Part shown: piece by piece, positions 2,650 to 29,410 of the stretch | Numbering within the stretch: position 1 is the first letter of the stretch | Layout: each line of letters starts with the position of its first letter | Assembly (NCBI GenBank): GCA_002269645.1 | Contig: NIVC01002782.1 | Location: 33,466-97,465 of the forward strand | Origin: Macrostomum lignano | Lineage: Eukaryota | Direction of reading: 5' to 3' | DNA: 64,000 nucleotides | Made by a program: the position numbers and the translations under genes | The notes under the pieces: model-generated | Seen by the model: the letters and a program-made list of their open reading frames with translations, nothing else | The model's database searches: none | Told to the model about the DNA's origin: nothing

Positions 2650-3310
2650 TCCCTCTCCTCTCGCACCCTCCCTCAGACTTCCCCAGACTCTCCCCTGATC
2701 AGCCTCCCTCACACTCTCCATCAGACTCTCTCCTAGCTCAGATTCTCTATCAGACTCTCCCCGACTCTCCCCTCACAATCTCCCTCAGACTCTCCCTCAG
2801 ACTCTCCCTCACACTCTCCCATCATACACTCCCTCAGACTCTCTCCTCAGACTCTCCCCTCACACTCTCCCTCAGACTCTCGCTAAGACTCTCCCTTACA
2901 CTCTCCCTCAGACTCTCGCTAAGACTCTCCCTTACACTCTCCCTCAGACTCTCGCTAAGACTCTCCCTTACACTCTCCCTCAGAATCTCGCTAAGACTCT
3001 CCCTTACACTCTCCCTCAGACTCTCGCTAAGACTCTCCCTTACACTCTCCCTCAGACTCTCGCTAAGACTCTCCCTTACACTCTCCCTCAGACTCTCGCT
3101 AAGACTCTCCCTTACACTCTCCCTCAGACTCTCGCTAAGACTCTCCCTTACACTCTCCCTCAGACTCTCGCTAAGACTCTCCCTTACACTCTCCCTCAGA
3201 CTCTCCTTCAGATACTCTTCACACTCTCCCTCAGACTCTCCCTTACACTCTCCCTCAGACTCTCCCTCAGACTCTCCCTCAGACTCTCGCTAAGACTCCG
3301 TCACACTCTA
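2650..3310. repeat. 12-bp CTCTCCCTCAGA-type minisatellite with a 36-bp higher-order unit
   Basis: Repeated CTCTCCCTCAGA-CTCTCGCTAAGA-CTCTCCCTTACA. Confidence 0.9.
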
Positions 3311-3809
3311 CCCTCACACTTTCCCCCTTACTCTTGCCCTTCATTCACACTGCAGCTTCGATATTGAATCAATTCCACGCGGAAAGTGCTGACACCGAAG
3401 CGGGGTACAATTAGCCTTTAGCCTGCAGTAGCTGGAGCTCCCCGCAGCCGCAAGGCTCTCACAGTTTCTCTACTCAAATTGACAGCTAGCGAGCGGGCCC
3501 TGACGACCCGATGACAGATCCAGATAGTATATTTCATCCTCAACTGTCACTGTCACCGGAAACTGCTGGAGTCTGTGCTGGGTGGCAGGCTGTGTTTCTA
3601 CTCTGTGCGCAGATTGAAAGCTTGGCTAGTCAGTTAGTAAGCCAAAGCAATAATCACTGCCAGTCACGAAACCGCGCTTTGTGGCCGCGCATTCTGTGTG
3701 GCGAAATTTACACCAATTTGCCTGGGGTGAAACTCGTACTTCAATGCATGTTTCTGCCAACAGATCTGCTAGTTTGTGGTAGAAACGTTTTATCAAAACC
3801 CACCACTAT

Positions 3810-3985: not shown

Positions 3986-4813
3986 TCCTGTATTTTAATT
4001 TCAACGTCAAACAGCCAACCCTTATCGATTGTAAAGTTTAATTTGTTACGTTTTAGACTTGTTTATCATTGCGTACGTAGCTATACATGTATACTGTAAA
4101 TAAAACAGTCTTCTTAACACGAAAACACCCAAATCATCTTATTAAAAGTGGCAATTTAGCCTTTAATCTTATAAAAATATTACTTATCATATAATAAATA
4201 GATATAGACAGACAAATATATCATTTAAAGATCTGAAAGCATGGCACACGGAATCAGAGTTGAGAAGGCTGATTTAAACATACGAGTATAAATATATCCA
4301 CAAAACACATTTAGAGTTCGGAATAAGTTTGCGTGTAGCTAACAAGATACATTTATATTGACGCAATGTGGTATGTAAGCAGTGTGTTAGCAGCAACTGA
4401 ATGATGTAATTAAATTTGGAGAAAACTGAACACTTAATCAGTATTCACAGTGCGATTACCTTATGAGTGCAACTGTTTACGAGCGTAGTCAGTCAATCTC
4501 CGATATGTACAGTATCATAAACAAGTGTCTACAATATTGAGGGCGAGAGTTGGACAAAAAATGGGACTTGAACCAAAGGTGCAGTCTTTTCTGTTTTGAG
4601 CTCAGCGATTTGGTTCACTTTCATTCACAATCGGTAAAAGAGAGACAAAAAAAGAAAGAATAGAGAGAAAAGAGAGGGAGAGAAGAGAGAAAAGGGAGAA
4701 GAGAGAGAGAAGAGAGAGAGAGAGAGGGGAGAAGAAAGGGAGAAGAGGGAAAAGAGAGATGAGAGTAAACAGGAAGCAGACAGTTGGCACTGGCAGACTG
4801 AGATGCGAGTCTA

Positions 4814-5485
4814 TCATACCTGACCGAGATAGAGCTTCTTGGTGAGGTGGCTGACGACTCCCACAGACCAGGGCGCCATATCGTCAGGCCTCGGCAGCTG
4901 CAGAACCCGCTGGTTCACCAGAGTCATGAGCTGGTGAAACTCCAGCTGGTTGCCAAACTTGGTGACTAAATCGCACAGGGTGACGGTGAACTGTGGGCCG
5001 CCATGCCCCAGCACCAGTGCCGTGTCAGCGAAGACGGGAAGGCCGCTGGCCGCAGCCGCCTGCGACCCATTCGGCAGCCTGTTGGCGTCGCAGCAGATCC
5101 TCGACTTAGTCAGCAGGCCTTCGTTATCGTACTGAACGATGAACACCTTGGGCTTGCAGCGCCACACCGGGGACTTGCTGAACGGCTCCAACAGGCGGTC
5201 AAAGTCCACGTCCAGGCCCGACACGTTGATGCCCCAGCCGTCCAGGGCGTTGTAGCAGCCCGACAGGCCGACCACCAGACAATCGTACACGTCGCAGCTC
5301 TGATCGTCGGCGAGGGTATCGAAGTACTCGTACACCTCCCGGTTGGTCTCGCCACTCAGCACGTTGCGCTCCCGGCGCTCGAACTGGAGGCTGTCGAAGG
5401 CGTCGCGCATCGGCTGCAGTCGGACCCGGGGATTGTCGCGATACAGCACGCAGAGCTTCCGGCTGCACGGGTACTGCTGCGGCAT
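4814..5485 (-). CDS. Catalytically dead caspase-like domain C (p20+p10 fold in one exon)
   Basis: Caspase motifs DCLVVGLSG (cf. DCFVCVILSHG), KPKVFIVQ (cf. GKPKLFFIQ), FADTALV, LEFHQLMTLVNQRV (cf. LEFMHILTRVNRKV), SHLTKKLYL (cf. SMLTKELYF). QACRG is replaced by QYDNE and the SHG His is missing. In-frame acceptor at 5510/5509; CAG|GTATGA donor at 4820. Confidence 0.8.
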   Translation of the reverse strand: MPQQYPCSRKLCVLYRDNPRVRLQPMRDAFDSLQFERRERNVLSGETNREVYEYFDTLADDQSCDVYDCLVVGLSGCYNALDGWGINVSGLDVDFDRLLEPFSKSPVWRCKPKVFIVQYDNEGLLTKSRICCDANRLPNGSQAAAASGLPVFADTALVLGHGGPQFTVTLCDLVTKFGNQLEFHQLMTLVNQRVLQLPRPDDMAPWSVGVVSHLTKKLYLGQV

Positions 5486-5514
5486 GGCCGGGGCAGCGGC
5501 GGGGTGCGGCTGAC

Positions 5515-5560
5515 TGTGTCTGTCTGTTTGCCTGTCTGTCTGTCTGTTTGCCTGTCTGTC

Positions 5561-5635
<75 letters not shown>

Positions 5636-5722
5636 GCCTGTCTGTCTGTTTGCCTGTCTGCCTGCCTGCCTGTCTGTCTGTCTGTCTGTCTGTCTGCCTG
5701 TCTGTTTGCCTGTCTGTCTGCC

Positions 5723-5789
<67 letters not shown>

Positions 5790-5842
5790 TTGTCTGTCTG
5801 TCTGTCTGTCTGACTGCCTGCCCGTCTCTGCCTGTCTGCCTC

Positions 5843-5905
<63 letters not shown>

Positions 5906-5918
5906 GCCTGTCTGTCTT

Positions 5919-5987
<69 letters not shown>

Positions 5988-6035
5988 GTCTGTCTGTGTC
6001 TGCCTTTTTGTTTTTGTCACTGTCTGTCCGTCTGC
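5515..6035. repeat. (CTGT)n/(GACA)n microsatellite
   Basis: Read directly; abuts the acceptor of caspase-like domain C. Confidence 0.95.
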
Positions 6036-6303
6036 CTACCCTTCTGTGTACCATCCTGCCTGTTAATCTACGCGTAAAAAAGTAAACAAGGCTGCCATTT
6101 GTCAATAAAAATCTCTACACAATTGTATTTTACTGATAAAAAAACTTTTTTAAGACTCCGTTTGACTCCATGTCAAAATTATAAAACAGTTTTCCTAAAT
6201 TCGAAAAGACAGCGTACTAACTATGCTACTTATTGTTAGTAAAAAACACAGCATTTGAAATTCGTATTAATGGCACCAGTTTAAAAACCTGCGCCGATCT
6301 AAG

Positions 6304-7911
6304 CTAATAGCGACCGACCCGACCGTCGCTGGCAGGGAACCGCACCAGCTTAGTCAGGGTGCTGAACACCTTCGGCATGGCGATCTCGGCGCAACCGCTG
6401 TCTCCCACCTTGGCCATCAGCTCCAGCACCATGTCCGTCAGCTCGGCGCCGCGGTCAGAATTTTGCTGTCCTGCTGTCAGCATCGCCTTGGCCAGCTCCT
6501 GGGCCGGGTTCGGCACCCGATGGCTGTCCATGAAGGGCAGCGGCGCATACAGGATGTAGAAGTCTGGGCCCAGCTGAAACTCCTGGCAGCGGGTCAGGGA
6601 GATGTACTCTTCCAGCCGCCCGGGGTTCAGCATGAAACCAAAGTGGTGCCGGCGAATTCGCTGCATACAGTCCAGGCGTTCCATTTCGCGCGGGGTGTGC
6701 ACGATGAACAGACGCGGCTTGCCGGCCAGGGCTGGACAGCGGTCCGAGCTAAACCGGCTGAACACCTCCTCGTGCAGGCGAAGTTTCGGGCGCAGCGGGT
6801 TCTCCAGGACGGCGTCGGTTTGGTTGCTAGGGACGCTGTACCTGCTGCTGCCGTAGCGATAGTAGCCGGAGTCCATGCCCTGCAGAGCGGGGATGGGATT
6901 TTGGGTCAGGGGATTGCGTGTCAGGGGATTGTGGGTCAGGGGATTGTGGGTCAGGGGATTGCAGGTCAGGGGATTGCGGGTCAGGGGATTGTGGGTCAGG
7001 TGATTGTGGGTCAGGGGATTGAGGGTCAGGGCCATTGTGGGTCAGGGGATTGTGTGTCAGGGGATTGCGGGTCCGGGGATTGTGGGTCAGGGGATTGTGG
7101 GTTAGGGAATTGTGGGTCAGGGATTGCGGGTCAGGGGATTGCGGGTCAGGAGATTGTGGGTCAGGGGATTTTGGGTCAGGTGATTGTGGGTCAGGGGATT
7201 GAGGGTCAGGGGATTGTGGGTCAGGGCCATTGTGGGTCAGGGGATTGTGGGTCAGGGGATTGCGGGTCCGGGGATTGTGGGTCAGGGGATTGTGGGTTAG
7301 GGAATTGTGGGTCAGGGATTGTGGGTCAGGGGATTGTGGGTCAGGGATTGAGGGTCAGGGGATTGTGGGTCAGGGATTGTGGGTCAGGTGATTGTGGGTC
7401 AGGGATTGTGGGTCAGGGATTGTGGGTCAAAGGATTGTGGGTCAGGTGATTGTGGGTCAGGGATTGTGGGTCAGGGGATTGTGAGCAGGATTTCGATTAA
7501 GAAGCGAATGCATTAACAGCCCACCTGCTCCGACCTGACGCCCGGGTGAACCACCCCCGACGGCGGCGTCAGAAGGAAGCCGTACTCGCAGATCAGGATG
7601 ACCACCAGACAGTCCAGCGGGTTGTGTTCGGCTGACGCTGCCAGCCGGCCGAGCTCAGAGTTCACCGACCCGGAGTTCACGTCGTCCAACCGGACGATTC
7701 GTTGCTTGTCGAAGCCGAGGCCCAGCAGGGCGCGCTCGTAGTCTTCGGCCCGGGCCGGCAGGTCGGCTTTGAAGGGCGGTGAACAGTCGCCGAATTTCAT
7801 GGTGGCGATGAGGCAGTGGCCTCGTCTGGACAGCGGGTAGGCAGCCAGCAGCTCGTCGGGATCCTGCTGCATGTGGGTGCCGGGTCGGACTGCAGCAAGG
7901 GTTGGAGGCAT
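6304..7911 (-). CDS. Catalytically dead caspase-like domain B; exons 7911 (or acceptor at 7889)-7525 and 6879-6304
   Basis: YPLSRRGHCLI, ALLGLGF, HNPLDCLVVILICEYG (no SHG), CPALAGKPRLFIVHTPRE (QACRG replaced by HTPRE), PDFYILYA, STLTKLVRF. Phase-0 intron CAG|GTGGGC...CTGCAG|GGC joins RSEQ to GMDS in frame. Confidence 0.8.
6890..7490. repeat. 15-bp minisatellite (GGGTCAGGGGATTGT), intronic
   Basis: Read directly; fills the intron of domain B. Confidence 0.95.
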
Positions 7912-7924
7912 TTAGGATCAGGGT

Positions 7925-8620
7925 TGGGCTGTGGGTCATTCATCACGGGTCAGTGGGTCATTCACTGTGGGTCGACAGTGGGTCATTCACTGTGGGTCGA
8001 GAGCAGGTCATTCACTGTGGGTCGACAGTGGGCCAGTCATCATGGGTCAGTGGGTCAATCATCATGGGTCAGTGGGTCATTCGTCATGGGTCAGTGGGTC
8101 AGTCATCATGGGTCAGTGGGTCAGTCATCATGGGTCAGTGGGTCAGTCATCATGGATCAGTGGGTCATTCGTCATGGGTCAGTGGATCATTCATTGTGAG
8201 TCGACAGTGAGCCAGCGGTCATGGGTCAGTGGGTCAGTCATCATGGGTCAGTGAGCCAGTGGTCATGGGTCAGTGTGCCATTCGTCATGGATCAGTGGGT
8301 CATTCACCGTAGGTCAGTGAGCCAGTCATCATGGGTCAGTGAGCCAGTCATCATGGGTCAGTGGGTCAGTCGTCATTGGTCAGTGTGCCATTGGTCAGTG
8401 GGTCATTCACCGTAGGTCAGTGGGCTAGTCATCATGGGTCAGTGGGTCAGTCATCATGGGTTAGTGGGTCAGTCGTCATGGGTCAGTGGGTCAGTCATCA
8501 TGGGTCAGTGGGTCATTCGTAATGGGTCAGTGGGTCCTCCTGCTCTTCCATCACGGGTCATTGGGTCATTTATCATAGGTCAGTAAGTAGATCATTCGTC
8601 TCAGGTCATGGGTATTGTGG
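7925..8620. repeat. Degenerate GGGTCAGT/CATCATGGGTCAGT minisatellite
   Basis: Read directly; lies between caspase-like domains A and B. Confidence 0.9.
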
Positions 8621-8804
8621 GGTCACTGACTCATTAATTATAAATCGCAACAAAACTATTGAAATGTGAAAAAGATCACTTGGCAAGGCACTATATATTT
8701 ATAAATTTTCAGACCGGAACAGCCAGTGGAAGAGGCGAGATTATGTATAAAAGTCCTCTACTATAAATTCTCTAATATAAGTCCTCTAATAGATACAGGG
8801 TATT

Positions 8805-10300
8805 CTATCGATAAATACTTGTACTCATAAGGTACAGCGGTTTCAGCAGAGCCCCGGTGCTGGCAAAGAAGTCCGGACTGACTCCATGCTCAAGCTGCTG
8901 GCTATAGTTCTCGTGAATTCGCTGCACCACATCGAACCGGAAGTCCTGCCTTGCGACCGCCTTGTCCTGCAGGGCAGACCGGACGGCCTCCGTCAGGTGC
9001 TCGCCGGCGCGGATGACCGCAAAGTCGGTCCAACTGGCAGGGAATGTCTCGGAATAGCCGGGGCCGATTGGGCCCGCGTCCGTGGGGAGCAGCGGCTTCG
9101 TGCGGCTCACCTGCGCGAGGGGGAGGCTAAGTAGGTCAAGTCAGGGTCAGACCAGGGTCAGGTCAGGGTCAGGTAGGTCAGGGTTAGGTAGGTTGGAGTC
9201 AGGTAGGTAGGGTCAGGTAGGTTAGGGTCAGGTAGGTCAGGGTCAGGTAGGTTAGGGTCAGGTCAGGGTCAGGTCAGGGTCAGTTCTGTCAGGTCAGGGT
9301 CAGGTAGGTCACGGTCAGGTCAAGGTCAAATAGGCCAGGTCAGATCATGTAGGTCAGGGTCAGGTCATGATCAGGTGTGTCAAGGCAGGTAGGTCAGGTC
9401 AGAGTCACAGAGGTCAAGGTCACAGACCTGGTAGTCAGGTCAGGGTTGGGTTAATTCAGGTCTAGGTCAGGGTTGGGTTAATTCAGGTCTAGGTCAGGGT
9501 TGGGTTAATTCAGGTCTAGGTCAGGGTTGGGTTAATTCAGGTCTAGGTCAGGGTTGGGTTAATTCAGGTCTAGGTCAGGGTTGGGTTAATTCAGGTCTAG
9601 GTCAGGGTTGGGTTAATTCAGGTCTAGTTCAGGTAGATCAGGTCATGGTTAGTCAGGTAAATTAGATCTGGGTCAAGTAAGTTGAGGTCAGGTACATGTA
9701 TTTCAGGATCAGGTATGTTAGGTAAAGAATGCAATATCATCTGGCCATACCTAGTAAGGTTATATAAGGTTCATAAGAAAGATGGGACTAAAGTAAAATG
9801 AGTTATGAAACATAAGGTTAGTAAGGTCATGATTTATAAAATTCTAATTGGGTTACAATAAAAAGTATTTTAAAAATGTAAAATGTTGGATTTTAACTAG
9901 GCTTATACATTTACAAAAAAAATTAACCAGCCAGGTGGGTCATTCTCACCTGAAAAAAGAAAATCTTTGGCTTTCCTTTCCACTGAGTGGATGTCATAAA
10001 TGGTTCAATAACTGAGTGAAAATCAAATGGTGCTCCATTGATAGTCAGTTGATAATTGCATAGGCAGCAGCCAGCAAAGTACAAAACAAAACAGCTTCCA
10101 GTCTCATTGGCATATTTCATGAGCTCTGTACTTAGCCAGTCATCGGCCAGTCCATTAGGCAGGTCTTGGTATTTAGTTCTAAAGCCAAGACTTTCAAATA
10201 TTGAAGGAATTCCATTCAATGAAGCTAGTTGCCAGTCCCGAATAACAAGGCAGATTCTTTGGCCAGTATGAGTGTCATAGGGCTCAACTGAACCAGCCAT
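8805..10300 (-). CDS. Catalytically dead caspase-like domain A; exons 10300-9950 and 9110-8805 (218 aa)
   Basis: RICLVI, FESLGF, SCFVLYFAG (no SHG), WKGKPKIFFFQ|VSRT (QACRG becomes QVSRT), WTDFAVI, ALLKPLYL. Phase-0 intron CAG|GTGAGA...GCGCAG|GTG. Confidence 0.8.
9130..9700. repeat. GGTCAG-rich intronic repeat with a 27-bp core (GGTCAGGGTTGGGTTAATTCAGGTCTA)
   Basis: Period 27 between 9438 and about 9625, with degenerate flanks. Confidence 0.9.
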
Positions 10301-12340: not shown

Positions 12341-15273
12341 TCAAATCAGGTGGAAATGTTTCAGACTGTTGCGCAGGTGCACCAGCTCGCGATCGATGCT
12401 GTCCAACTTCTGCTCGAGCAGCTCCTGGCCAATTCGAGTTTCGGGGTTCATGAGAATCGTGAATGAAGATGTTTGGCATGTATGTAGCGGGACACGAGGG
12501 TTGCGGGGCACCCTGGGCGCAACGCCTTCAGCGAAATCAATACACATCCACCTGCCCATTCCGCTGACTCTCTGTCTTGGGGGTTGGCCCTCACGGGTGT
12601 AAATCGCGCAACAACTGGTTATCGTGATTGATACAGGTAAAGAGTAATTACAGTCTTACAGCGTGTTAGAAAATCGATTACAAAATGATAGATTGTATAA
12701 ATAATAAAGTTTGCAAGTTGATCATGATGACTCTAGCAGCTAAACTTGTCCGCAACCGTCACCTACGTGAGGCCTTTTTTGTCCAGTCAGAGAGATTCGC
12801 ACTACTTTTTTAATCCTGCGACTCTGAGTGAAGGTTTGGAAAAATTTTTCAAATAGGTTTCTGTTTAAAATACGATTAATACTACTTAGTAGAAAATACC
12901 CACAGTAGCTTATTAAGAGTGTCAGGAACTTTTATAAAAATGTAATAATCAAGAAATTATTTATGAACTATGTAATTTATTAAAGATGTAACTTTAAAAT
13001 TATGAAATTTATGAATTATGAGCTTTGATATTGAGATAATTATGGCTTATGGAAAAATGAATTACGAATTTGATGATTCTGAAAGCATTAAATATACAAT
13101 TTAGGAATTATTATGAAATTTATGACCATAAACTTTATGAATTATGCAATTATGGAATTCAAGAAACTCAATTGTAGATGGCAGCCAGACCTGATCCCGC
13201 ACGCTGTGCCAAGTGTGATGCGCAGAGTCGGTCCGGGGCACCCTAGTCAGGGCAGCCTCAACCTCGCGCCGTTCCACTTGCAGACAGTCGTAGCGCCGCT
13301 CCAGTTCAGCGGGATCGCCCGGCAAGTCAAGAGCGTCTGCGGTGTCGATGATTCTCCGGCGCTCCAGATCGGCCAGAGAACGGCGCAGACTGTCGGCGGC
13401 GGCGTCTCCTGCTACCGTTTGAGCCTAAAATTAGTAGGTAGGAATAATGTACTGCTTATAATTAGCACACAGATAGATTATAAACTACTGACTGCACTAC
13501 TTACAGTAGAAATATTAGCACACAGATAGATTATAAACTACTGACTGCGCTACTTACAGTAGAAATATTAGCACACAGATAGATTATAAACTACTGACTG
13601 CACTACTTACAGTAGAAATATTAGCACACAGATAGATTATAAACTACTGACTGCGCTACTTACAGTAGAAATACTAGCACACAGATAAATTATAAGCTAC
13701 TGACTGCACTACTTACAGTAGAAATATTAGCACACAGATAGATTATAAGCTACTGACTGCACTACTTACAGTAGAAATATTAGCACACAGATAGATTATA
13801 AACTACTGACTGCGCTACTTACAGTAGAAATATTAGCACACAGATAGATCGTTTGCAGTTCAACAACTTGACGATTTTTCCTCACCTGTTGTTCGGCCGC
13901 ATCGCCTTCGTCCCCGCCGACAGCTATCATAGAGACTCGCCTGTTGCTGCTCCGATTTCGCAGGTACTGCAGCTCGGCCTCCGCAGCTGTCAGTCGGCCC
14001 AGCAGACTGTCGCACAGGTGCCGACTGCGGGCCAGTTGGTTCTCCGCTAGCGCCAGCTCGCGCTCTTTGGCAGCCAGCGCCAAATGGAGTCGAGCTAATT
14101 CGTCTGCTTCGGAGCCTACAGAAGCGCCGCTGTTTGGAATTGGCTGGGCCTCGGTTGCCAAGCTGGCGGGCTGCGAGCAGGTGAGTAAAGAGACTCTTGC
14201 GCCACTTTACTTTTACCTAATCTTGGCGCCATTCCTGTCACTCCTTGGCGCTACTCCTGTCACTCCCTGGCGCCATTCCTGTCACTCCTTGGCGCCCCTC
14301 CTGTCACTCCTTGGCGCCATTACTGTCACTCCTTGGCGCCATTACTGTCACACCTTGGCGCCATTCCTGTCACTCCTTGGCGCCCCTCCTATCACACCTT
14401 GGCGCCATTCCTGTCACTCCAATTGGTCAACCTAAGCGCTCACCTCAGCCAGGTGATCGCACAGGTTGCGCCTCTCCTCTGTGCTGATTGGGGTCAGATC
14501 TGGAATTAAAAAAAACCAGCTATTACAGGTGGCCAAAAGTTTTTTGTCAATTTTTACAGGCAGTTTTAAGTTCACAAGGCAATCCAAGACAGTTGGGATA
14601 TTCAACATTATTTCAAGAAGGTCGAGCTCCTGGACCTAAATATTATCAAAAGCAGGGTTATGGAAATTTTCAATTGAAAATTTCAACTACTTGCCTCCCG
14701 AGCCCTTGGACTTGCGATTGGTGGCCAATCCGGGGTCATCAGCAATGGCGCTCCTGTGATTGGCAAGCTGCTCGTCAAGTAGGCGACGCTCTGTAGCCAG
14801 GTTTCGCCTTACAGTATTCTGCAAAAGAAATAATTTTCGCGCAGATATCGATTTAAGCTACTGTTAGTAGAAATATAGAAACACACATGAATAAATATAC
14901 ATTTGCAATCTAAAAAGCTAACCTGCAATTCGCGCAGCTCATTACAGTGCTGCTCCGTTTTCTGACACACGTAGGCTTGGTGGCGGCTGTTCAACTGGTT
15001 GAATACCCGATCCCATTGCTCCTGGAAGCAGATTGTTTGCAAATGCTTAAAGATCACTGAAGATTAAGTTTTACTATAATTAAAATTGAAACAGGCAACC
15101 CAGTTATTTACCTCGCTGCAGTCTTTTGCAGCAGTTTTAATGCACATAAGAGCAGTGGGATTGTCCTGCACAATGGCCTCCTTAAGGCGATGCAAAAGTG
15201 AATTGTCTGCATGGGCATCAGTGTGGCTACCAGCTAAATTGTGCTGTGTTGCTCTACTGCTCTTAGTTGTCAT
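12341..15273 (-). CDS. MPHOSPH9: MPHOSPH9-like coiled-coil protein (about 343 aa); exons 15273-15112, 15021-14923, 14818-14691, 14483-14444, 14170-13886, 13424-13191, 12424-12341
   Basis: All exons have GT/AG ends and consistent phases (1032 nt). The C-terminus ERREVEAALTRVP...DQELLEQKLDSIDRELVHLRNSLKHFHLI resembles the MPHOSPH9 C-terminus as I recall it (IESALSRMP...NQEALEDRLERINRELGSVRMTLKKFHVL). The start codon is uncertain. Confidence 0.65.
13460..13850. repeat. 53-bp minisatellite, about 7.5 copies, intronic
   Basis: TTAGCACAC at 13462 and 13515 gives period 53. Confidence 0.95.
14220..14420. repeat. 22-bp minisatellite (CCTTGGCGCCATTCCTGTCACT), intronic
   Basis: About 9 copies read directly. 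Confidence 0.95.
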
Positions 15274-17954
15274 TGCAAAGGCTGAAATACCAAACTGATT
15301 TTTATTGACAATAGTTAAGCAAGTTAGGCAAAGGAGGGTAGAGAAAAGAGAAACCAAGAAGAAAAAAGAAAAAAAGAAAAGAAAAGATAATATATAATGA
15401 AATTAAAAGTAAATATAAACCTTTAACATGTTAGATTACTATCAAAAATTTGAAAGGACTTATAAACTAGATATTTCATTTTCATTTGGTAAGTTGGGGC
15501 TATCAAGGGGCCCTGCGCATCAGCCCTGGGGAGGGCTCTTATGCAACTAATTTATTTTAGTTTCCAGTTTGAGCGATACATTAAGTATTTTGTTCGAGAA
15601 ATAAAACAAATATTTTCTAATAATACAATGATGCCATTTAAAAACTTAAAACAAATAATAGGGTACAATTAATCAATATAAAGTCAATTTAAAGCAAATG
15701 GTTGAAGTATTGAGTAAAACAAATAAATATAAATAAATATGATTGATAAAACTAAAACAAATATTGGGGTGTAAATATGTACAGTGAATCACAAAGCAGT
15801 GATGTTTTGAGTGTTTTGGTTTAAAAATGGAGGCCAGCTTCTTCACTACTAATGAGAGTAGGTAGACACAGCTATGATATAGGAACCTGCCTATGTTAGT
15901 TAACCTTACGAAAACGAAGGATTCCCTGGGAATACTTGGAGAACACCGTAAGTAGAGAGGTCCCAAACCCACAGTTGAGGGTTGAGCAAATTTTGTTAAT
16001 CATCAAACCAGACGCAACAGCATCCCAACAAAGCAAGCCCAATTGGTAAGTTCAACATTCAGATATCCTAACTTTGTGATAATTATGTGTAGTGGACCTG
16101 GCCCCACAATAAACAGCATTTTGGGTGAATAATGTACTTATTAAGAGGACTTATAAGCTAGATAGAAAGGTTTGGGGGCTATATATATAGTTTTGCAAAT
16201 AAGAGTTTGCAAAACCTTGATGCTTGATCAGGGGTGGACTTAGATAGAAATGCAAAGGGCATATGCCCCTATTAGTTTTTTCATCCTAGGTAAAAAATTG
16301 GTTAAATAATAATATTATATCTTTATATATATAACTTATAAGTTTGATAGGGTACCCCCTGCCCCATCAAAAATGTTTTGTATCTATGACTATATCTAGC
16401 CCTAATTTAAACCAGATAAAAATGCTTTGATTTTGTTTTCTTGAATTTACCTGTCTTAGGTCATATTAAAACCACTAAGAATATTGAAAAAAGGAATAAT
16501 TATTAAGGAAATATAAAGTATCATTATTGACTAATTCTCAACTTGCTAACTGTGAATTTATCTATATAACTTGTATAAATCTATATCTATATATAAAACT
16601 ATAAATCTAAAGCTTAGACTATTCTGTGACTCTCTGCTACATAGAATAGAACCTAATCTTTAACTTACTTTAAACATGAAACTTAGGACTTCATCATTTT
16701 AGCTTATAAAAATGAAGCATAGTAGCAGGGACTACAACTACAAGTATTCTTACTGTGACTTACTCTAGGTTTAAGAACAAAATATTAAATGCACTGCACG
16801 TCTGCAGTCCTATGTAGAATGGAAAAAGTTGGTGACACCGTCATCGATTTCTCATAAAAGAATCATAGGACATAATACAATGTCAAGACTGTAGTGTGGT
16901 GCCTGTGGAAGTGTAGCCGCAGCAGATTTTATAGGTTGGGCCTTCGCCTTTGGACTGCATTTAATAAAATAAAGCTTTACCACTTAAACTATTGAGGCAA
17001 TATACAACAATGGAAGTGGAGTCGACGAGATGCAACGATTACCGAATTTTGAAGCTTAACATGCTCAAGTATTAATTTTATCGTCTTACCGAGTAAGACA
17101 TCGATAGCAAAAGTGCAAAAGTTCAAGATAAATTTTTGTACGCAGCATTACCTAAAGTAAAACAAAGTTTACTTTTTTTGCCTGAAAGGCTTGTCTCAAA
17201 CTTCTCTTTCTGAGTAACAAATAACAAGCTATTGATTAGAATTTTTTCAGTATTTTTTGTTAGTATGATTCTATATGCAAATTAGAGTCAGCATATTATT
17301 TGACCGGCTTACATTCTTTTAATTTGCACAGCGAAGAAAGTTTTAAAAGCTTCATGTTATGTAATTGTTGAACGCGGTTTTCTTTCTTTGATCCAGTTGT
17401 TTTATCTTCTGTCTTGTCTGTCTGTCTGACACAGAAGATAATAGATACAAAGCAATTTAACTTAATATAGAATAGTCATTTTATTATTTTATTATTTTAT
17501 TCTGTTGACTGTGTTGTCAAAAAACTAAATATTATCATTTAGTCGAGGCTAAAGCATATCAAAACAATAAGTTTTATAGTTCATGGCTTTTTTCATCAGC
17601 TCATTCAAGTTAAAAAATATTGATATCACCCACTCAATTGAAACGTGATGAAAGATTTTATTGTGTTGCCAAACAATTTCTACATTTTTTATCTTCATGT
17701 GTAGACTATATTTAAAAAATTAAAATAAATATGGTCTTTTAAAAAATCAGCATTGTTGTTTTCAGTTATGATTTTAGCTCGTAATGTATAAGAAAATATA
17801 ACTTTAATAGTTGAAAGTCGTTTATTATTGATTAAATTAAGACATCTTGGCTTTTTTGTCCTCTTTCTCTTGAGCAACAGAATCACCGATCTTACTTTTC
17901 TGCTTTGAATTTCAACTCAAAAAAGCAAAGCAACACCAGCGGCTGGCCCGCCAA

Positions 17955-29410
<11,456 letters not shown>

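Follow-up and report, generated by a model that had tools for sequence, protein, structure and literature searches.

Three caspase-like genes of Macrostomum lignano, here called A, B and C, lie head to tail on the minus strand within the final 64 kb of contig NIVC01002782.1 (97,465 bp, assembly Mlig_3_7, GCA_002269645.1), with no opposite-strand gene between them. Throughout, "the window" is this whole 64,000-nucleotide (nt) stretch, and contig position equals window position + 33465. The gene models encode products of 218 (A), 307 (B) and 223 (C) amino acids (aa), which resemble short-prodomain effector caspases and are predicted from their residues to be catalytically dead. A sequence-only reading of this DNA had noticed that splice phases at the ends of the genes would allow the three domains to be joined in one covalent protein of about 760 aa, or else that a polycistronic unit might be resolved by spliced-leader (SL) trans-splicing, with three separate genes left as a further option. 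Our analysis does not support the fusion. We consider it very likely that A, B and C give rise to separate proteins, taking together the operon and a reading in which the genes have separate promoters, and we favour, with a probability of roughly 0.55, tandem genes that would be co-transcribed and resolved by SL trans-splicing.

The spacing of the three genes points to an operon. Around 15% of M. lignano genes are located in operons, and the published examples have gaps inflated by repeats, with a repeat-adjusted mode of ~100 bp and a threshold of 1 kb (Ustyantsev and Berezikov, 2021, PMC8629364). Here, the distance from stop to acceptor is 916 nt between A and B and 795 nt between B and C, of which 606 nt (7931-8536, a tandem array with a period of 22/44/66 nt) and 481 nt (5517-5997, a (GACA)n array of ~120 units that reads (TGTC)n on the forward strand) are array, leaving repeat-adjusted gaps of 310 and 314 nt, under the 1-kb criterion. 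The stop codons of A (TAG, 8807-8805) and B (TAG, 6306-6304) are each followed by an AT-rich unique stretch, 268 nt with a GC fraction of 0.37 after A (8537-8804) and 306 nt with a GC fraction of 0.35 after B (5998-6303), which are probably the 3' untranslated regions (UTRs) of these genes. They contain TATAAA/AATATA at +102 to +106 after the A stop and AGTAAA/AATACA at +170 to +175 after the B stop. Between array and mRNA start, ~40 nt of unique sequence are present for B and ~0 nt for C, so that there is almost no room for promoters of their own. Upstream of A lie 2 kb of 30% GC, with a TATATA 60 nt before the ATG.

The sequence just before B also fits trans-splicing. The B leader (7873-7895) consists of an acceptor, CTGCAG/ (7895-7890; a slash marks the exon boundary here and below), and 17 nt (7889-7873) before the ATG. 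The acceptor is pyrimidine-rich, as had been noticed from the sequence, with a pyrimidine fraction of 0.625, and it conforms to [T/C]TNCAG, the leading motif at M. lignano trans-splice acceptors, which is found in 44% of known sites (PMC8629364). The chance of meeting this motif in any 40-nt stretch is ~8%. The C leader (5486-5510) has a candidate acceptor, TCAG/, ending at 5510 and 24 nt before the ATG; reading AGTCAG/, it does not conform to the motif. The proposal of an SL-resolved polycistronic unit agrees with published operon anatomy, and does so better for B than for C.

In the scheme that we propose, a promoter within the 2 kb of AT-rich DNA before A would drive co-transcription of A, B and C, and 3' ends would form in the AT-rich stretches past the stops of A and B. 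A spliced leader of 35 nt would be added just upstream of the B ATG, at CTGCAG/ (7890/7889), and likewise for C, where the exact site is less certain. The tandem arrays in the gaps would then be repeat-inflated intercistronic spacers, not introns, and each gene would be translated from its own AUG to its own stop, with no covalent three-domain protein normally being made. The M. lignano leader is 35 nt long and itself ends in ATG (...TTGCATG) (PMC8629364). Added at 5509, it would place this AUG in frame with C and extend the protein by M-PHPAAAPA, while at 7889/7892 for B, or at 5493 as an alternative site for C, the AUG would be out of frame. An in-frame ATG is also present 13 codons upstream of the B start (7873-7911, MPPTLAAVRPGTH-MQQ...), directly after a TAA; this ATG at 7911 would be usable only if B mRNAs started upstream of 7911, which the annotated models do not.

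Further information comes from the genomic copies of the locus. The locus on this contig (L001) is 100% identical to the window reverse strand 1-20300, and there are two more copies, L002 (NIVC01002007.1), with no differences from the window outside the (GACA)n array, and L003 (NIVC01002781.1), with many 1-nt deletions, typical of an unpolished contig. L003 also carries two T-to-A differences (at 2635-2645, equivalent to window 7899-7889, and at 5030-5037, equivalent to window 5500-5493), which change CTG to CAG before the ATGs of B and C and give the extra acceptors TTGCAG/ and CCGCAG/. Across the copies, the coding sequences (CDSs) in GenBank start at 7878, 7890 and 7896 for B and at 5488 and 5491 for C. 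The L002 starts (B VRPGTH..., C PAMPQQ...) coincide with the first codon in frame downstream of each L003-allele acceptor (TTGCAG/CAGTCC and CCGCAG/CCCCGG), which is what SL-trimmed transcripts of the L003 allele would give; the match was found post hoc and is suggestive only. A rule by which the annotated 5' ends are offset by 1 nt from the window's own acceptors was rejected, as it fits B in one copy and fails for C. Conservation of the junctions across the three copies was also set aside as uninformative, since two are identical outside (GACA)n and the third differs mostly by 1-nt deletions.

We then considered the sites of the proposed fusion, all of which, together with the stops of A and B, lie on the minus strand at the positions and in the phases that had been given for them. 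At the end of A, the candidate donors TGA/GTACAA (last exon base 8825) and CAA/GTATTT (8819) are both in phase 1, as is the B acceptor, which ends at 7890 with an exon start at 7889. At the end of B, CGG/GTCGGT (6319) is in phase 0, as is the C acceptor AGTCAG/CCG with an exon start at 5509. The joined frame is open throughout, giving 752 aa with donor 8825 or 754 aa with donor 8819, and its junctions are those predicted, ...LYLM(ST)-I-RPGTHMQQ between A and B and ...FPASDGR-PHPAAAPAMPQQ between B and C; the junction peptides expected of a fused protein are LYLMSTIRPGTH and FPASDGRPHPAAAPA. This compatibility of phases is, however, no better than chance. In the last 48 nt, GT occurs in phases 2, 1 and 1 in A and in phases 0, 2, 1, 0 and 1 in B, and among shuffled tails 43% (A) and 55% (B) contain a GT of the needed phase inside 8 codons. 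Such a GT is carried, in any given phase, by 37-42% of the window's open frames of at least 100 codons (n = 156). The frames before the ATGs of B and C are open for trivial reasons, the former for only 13 codons and the latter because (GACA)n has no stop there.

The quality of the splice signals argues in the same direction. Cis donors in M. lignano show GT[G/A]AG in 122,399/187,627 regions, or 65% (PMC8629364), and none of the three proposed inter-domain donors fits this pattern. Compared with MAG/GTRAGT, they have 3/9 (8825), 6/9 (8819) and 6/9 (6319, with a C at +3) matches, which bears out the weakness that the sequence-only reading had conceded, whereas the real introns have 8/9 (A, CAG/GTGAGA) and 7/9 (B, CAG/GTGGGC). 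The C acceptor is without a pyrimidine tract, its pyrimidine fraction being 0.275 compared with 0.63-0.68 in the real introns, and the B-C gap upstream of it holds 143 AG and 121 CAG on the sense strand. Cis joining of 6319 to 5510 would thus need more than 100 equivalent CAGs to be ignored, which makes this acceptor implausible. The arrays in the gaps had also been taken to resemble those of the introns. Both gaps do contain them (7931-8536 and 5517-5997), but tandem arrays occur across the window outside introns too, and elsewhere in the window they are found at 8-602, 1418-1640, 2668-3325, 4639-4765, 13461-13849, 14222-14420 and 18975-19535; arrays in the gaps are therefore not specific evidence for introns.

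The GenBank annotation was derived from RNA-seq assemblies that were split into mature mRNAs wherever SL or poly(A) signals mapped, with TransDecoder as the next step (Wudarski et al., 2017, PMC5730564). It places three genes at the locus, each with its own start and stop, in agreement with the option of separate genes, which we favour at the protein level. A is complete and ends at its own stop, no fused isoform is given, and the spliced 218-aa model of A is exactly PAA55237.1 (BOX15_Mlig015211g1, complete). B (PAA55236.1, BOX15_Mlig012903g5) is annotated with 309/313 aa and C with 224/225 aa, the starts lying 3-24 nt before the ATGs, and B is labelled 5' partial solely because its frame stays open to the mRNA 5' end. 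In a collection of 5.8 billion proteins, none contained both B and C. Exact look-ups among transcript-derived proteins from public run assemblies were empty for B and C and found A only in the GenBank genome. Homologue searches with B and C returned M. lignano genome and UniProt entries only, and a search with A gave no matches although A is in the collection, which we attribute to a word-index limit.

UniProt has two models, A0A1I8H9E4 (411 aa) and A0A1I8I508 (392 aa), in which A exon 2 is joined to B; both stem from an older assembly. Their junction, LYLMST-T-VRPGTH, corresponds to donor 8819 and an acceptor, GCAG/, that lies 3 nt upstream of 7890 and has its AG only in the L003 allele (TTGCAG/CAG/TCC), where the window reads TTGCTGCAG. 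A0A1I8I508 ends ...FPASDGR, which is the proposed B donor (6319). Both models are without A exon 1, without C and without a start Met. In A0A1I8I508, GWKN stands in place of RLEEYISLTRCQEFQLGPD, which amounts to a 44-nt GT...AG "intron" (GTACAT...CCCAG, giving ...NPGGWKNFYILY) placed across a 1-nt deletion, and at the equivalent of ~6560-6620 the model reads ...MLNPGGWKNFYILY... where it replaces ...MLNPGRLEEYISLTRCQEFQLGPDFYILY.... The missing exon 1 and the intron invented across an assembly deletion make these models look like frame-preserving ab initio predictions, which they probably are, and A0A1I8I508 is unfit as splicing evidence. Base composition would explain how such models arise: A exon 1 is AT-rich (GC 0.41, GC at third codon positions (GC3) 0.36), and exon 2 (GC 0.61, GC3 0.75) as well as B and C (GC3 0.82-0.85) are GC-rich, so that a predictor trained on composition may have left out exon 1 and strung the GC-rich blocks together. 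The fused UniProt models at this locus should not be trusted.

Several points weigh against an SL-resolved operon. Both the co-transcription and the trans-splicing of A, B and C are steps that we infer. The 5' end of B is annotated at 7878 on this contig and at 7890 on NIVC01002007.1 despite identical sequence there, no annotated 5' end falls exactly on 7889 or 5509, and for trans-splicing, too, the C acceptor is weak. Neither AATAAA nor ATTAAA was found past the stop of A or B, while the upstream neighbour has AATAAA at +59. A leader added at 7889 would put its AUG out of frame and open a 31-codon upstream reading frame running past the B start, and two UniProt models join A exon 2 to B. A less likely alternative is that the three genes are transcribed separately, with B and C having their own promoters and capped starts in or at the arrays and no trans-splicing taking place. 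The annotated 5' ends (7878, 7890 and 7896 for B; 5488 and 5491 for C) are scattered as transcription starts would be and lie off this allele's AG, the C acceptor is weak, CTAAAT is present ~20-25 nt upstream of the B starts, and trans-splicing does not affect ~60-70% of M. lignano genes (PMC8629364, PMC5730564). Such promoters would nevertheless have hardly any unique DNA to occupy, and the C mRNA start adjoins a 480-nt (GACA)n array. Separate transcription would also leave to a chance of ~8% the consensus trans-splice acceptor 17 nt before the B ATG, and the L002 CDS starts of B and C follow the L003-allele acceptors, as SL-trimmed transcripts would.

Covalent joining of the domains has less in its favour. 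Cis-splicing from 8819/8825 to 7889 and from 6319 to 5509, with one ~753-aa triple-pseudocaspase protein as the main product, appears highly improbable to us. The open joined frame of 752/754 aa is offset by a phase match at chance level and non-consensus donors, and the second joint would have to use a C acceptor without a pyrimidine tract in the face of 121 competing CAGs. A0A1I8H9E4 and A0A1I8I508 use donor 8819 and the latter ends at the B donor, but both lack A exon 1 and one has the invented 44-nt intron, whereas the GenBank model of A is complete at its own stop and no protein in the databases combines B with C. Gene models with several caspase domains are known in arthropods; here, the stops fall 4-7 codons past the C-terminal motif of the caspase domain, at the place where genuine caspases also terminate. 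Chance-level phases, poor donors, an implausible C acceptor and a three-gene, RNA-seq-guided annotation together leave the single protein of about 760 aa unsupported. A minor A-B chimera, which could coexist with the other readings, is also unlikely. On a polycistronic precursor, donor 8819, the better of the two at the end of A with 6/9 matches, would sometimes pair in cis with the trans-splice acceptor of B and give a low-abundance two-domain message alongside the three normal mRNAs; this acceptor is in principle open to any upstream cis donor (a principle cited in PMC8629364). The UniProt fusion models use the same junction, but they are probably ab initio, and the RNA-seq-guided annotation contains no such isoform. 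Were this cis/trans competition for the B acceptor to occur, which we doubt, it would yield a pseudocaspase with two tethered domains, in effect a ready-made heterodimer, in addition to the free proteins. A full three-domain fusion is much less likely than the A-B chimera, owing to the C acceptor.

The separate products expected of the tandem genes can be assigned to the caspase family, and the pseudocaspase label that they had been given is appropriate. B and C match Pfam Peptidase_C14 with 27.1 and 22.9 bits, above the cut-off of 21.4, and the match of A, with 15.2 bits, is below it; a BLASTP alignment running from N- to C-terminus (25% identity, E = 7e-13) connects A with C. The best PDB sequence matches are the effector caspases 3, 6 and 7. 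At the catalytic Cys site, FIVHTPRE of B aligns to ...FIIQACRG, and the KPK-x-F-x-x-Q context identifies FFFQVSRT in A and FIVQYDNE in C as the corresponding segments, the cysteine being replaced in all three. The SHG position of the catalytic His, read by eye, is AGC in A, CEYG in B and SGC in C. As the catalytic residues are replaced in all three, A, B and C would be pseudocaspases and not active proteases, and a role in regulating active caspases, through pairing with them, is conceivable. AlphaFold2, run on the single sequence of A, gave a model with a mean predicted local distance difference test score of 37.9, too low for fold comparison. In the A-C alignment, the start Met of A is 4 residues from that of C, and both proteins stop 3-7 residues past an L-K-x-LYL motif that aligns with LTKKLYF at the C-terminus of caspase-6, 3 residues from the caspase-6 end. 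This end-to-end alignment indicates that the duplication took in the start and stop codons as well as the domain, the pattern to be expected when whole genes are copied. Using tblastn, we found these three to be the only pseudocaspase copies in the window.

In detail, gene A consists of exon 1 (9950-10300, with the ATG at 10300), which ends ...FFFQ at the donor CAG/GTGAGA, an intron (9111-9949) filled with a 27-mer and AGGTC-type arrays and bounded by GTGAGA and the acceptor CGCGCAG/, and exon 2 (8805-9110), which contains the two candidate inter-domain donors and the stop. A sharp compositional boundary inside gene A coincides with this array-filled intron, and the AT-rich exon 1 has its homologue in the N-terminal half of C, which is GC-rich. 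In gene B, exon 1 (7525-7872) starts with the ATG at 7872 (MQQDPDELL...) and ends at the donor CAG/GTGGGC. The intron (6880-7524) runs from GTGGGC to the acceptor CTCTGCAG/, and exon 2 (6304-6879) contains the candidate donor CGG/GTCGGT and the stop. The B intron (645 nt) is almost wholly a 15-mer array with a single AG on its sense strand, which is the acceptor; for comparison, there are 19 AG in the A intron and 143 in the B-C gap. Gene C is a single exon (4814-5485) with its ATG at 5485 and a TGA at 4816-4814. Its end, ...LGQ-V-stop, carries CAG/GTATGA (4814-4822), which with 7/9 matches is better than any proposed inter-domain donor. C could conceivably splice to another 3' exon, although the 6 kb that follow carry no annotated gene in GenBank.

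Upstream of A, the neighbour on the same strand is a multi-exon gene (12341-15279, minus strand; 349 aa in GenBank) with array-filled introns (13461-13849 and 14222-14420) and an AATAAA 59 nt past its stop. Neither the SL sequence nor an SL RNA gene was found in the window, and Rfam and tRNA scans of it were also empty.

Taken together, the locus represents an ordinary lineage-specific tandem cluster of dead effector-caspase-like genes and probably another of the repeat-inflated operons of M. lignano. Much of this is already known: GenBank lists the genes as hypothetical proteins, trans-splicing and operons have been described in detail in M. lignano, and pseudocaspases are an established kind of protein. 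The literature searched contained no report of three dead effector-caspase-like genes in tandem in M. lignano, and the identifiers Mlig012903 and Mlig015211 were not mentioned in the full-text literature searched or in the supplements of the key papers. Were the fusion to be confirmed, it would provide a rare single chain able to form an intramolecular caspase-like dimer and a case of operon genes merging into a multi-domain protein. As it stands, the locus is compact and suited to testing SL trans-splicing across tandem arrays.

Catalytically inactive caspase homologues such as vertebrate cFLIP and Caenorhabditis elegans CSP-2 and CSP-3 pair with active caspases or block them, and do not cleave substrates themselves. 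A, B and C are similar to these in that their caspase-like domain has another residue in place of the catalytic cysteine, and the weak PDB sequence matches of B include a cFLIP chain (3h11). A, B and C have no death-effector domains, and the likeness is drawn here as one of kind. An exhaustive search with B returned 8 proteins at E up to 1e-3, comprising one paralogue, arthropod gene models and one 221-aa run-assembly protein. Several of the arthropod models have 2-3 caspase domains, as in Lycorma delicatula XP_075217418.1, Panulirus ornatus XP_071547584.1 and Thrips palmi XP_034246694.1 (E 1e-10 to 1e-3), and single gene models containing two or three caspase domains, each complete, were seen in a mite, a planthopper, a lobster, a thrips and a mosquito. 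They share with the proposed fusion the presence of several Peptidase_C14 domains in one predicted polypeptide, but they are remote, are mostly computational predictions and are silent on splicing at this locus. We rejected them as relatives of the same architecture; they are probably top-ranked because scores add over domains. The closest parallel to the tandem genes as a transcription unit is found in the SL operons of M. lignano itself (Wudarski et al., 2017, PMC5730564; Ustyantsev and Berezikov, 2021, PMC8629364). The C acceptor, which is off motif, and the adjusted gaps of ~310 nt (3' UTR included), which exceed the ~100-bp mode, differ from those operons. Like them, A, B and C are same-strand neighbours separated by array-inflated gaps of less than 1 kb after repeat adjustment, with a [T/C]TNCAG acceptor before B and a conventional upstream region for the first gene, A.

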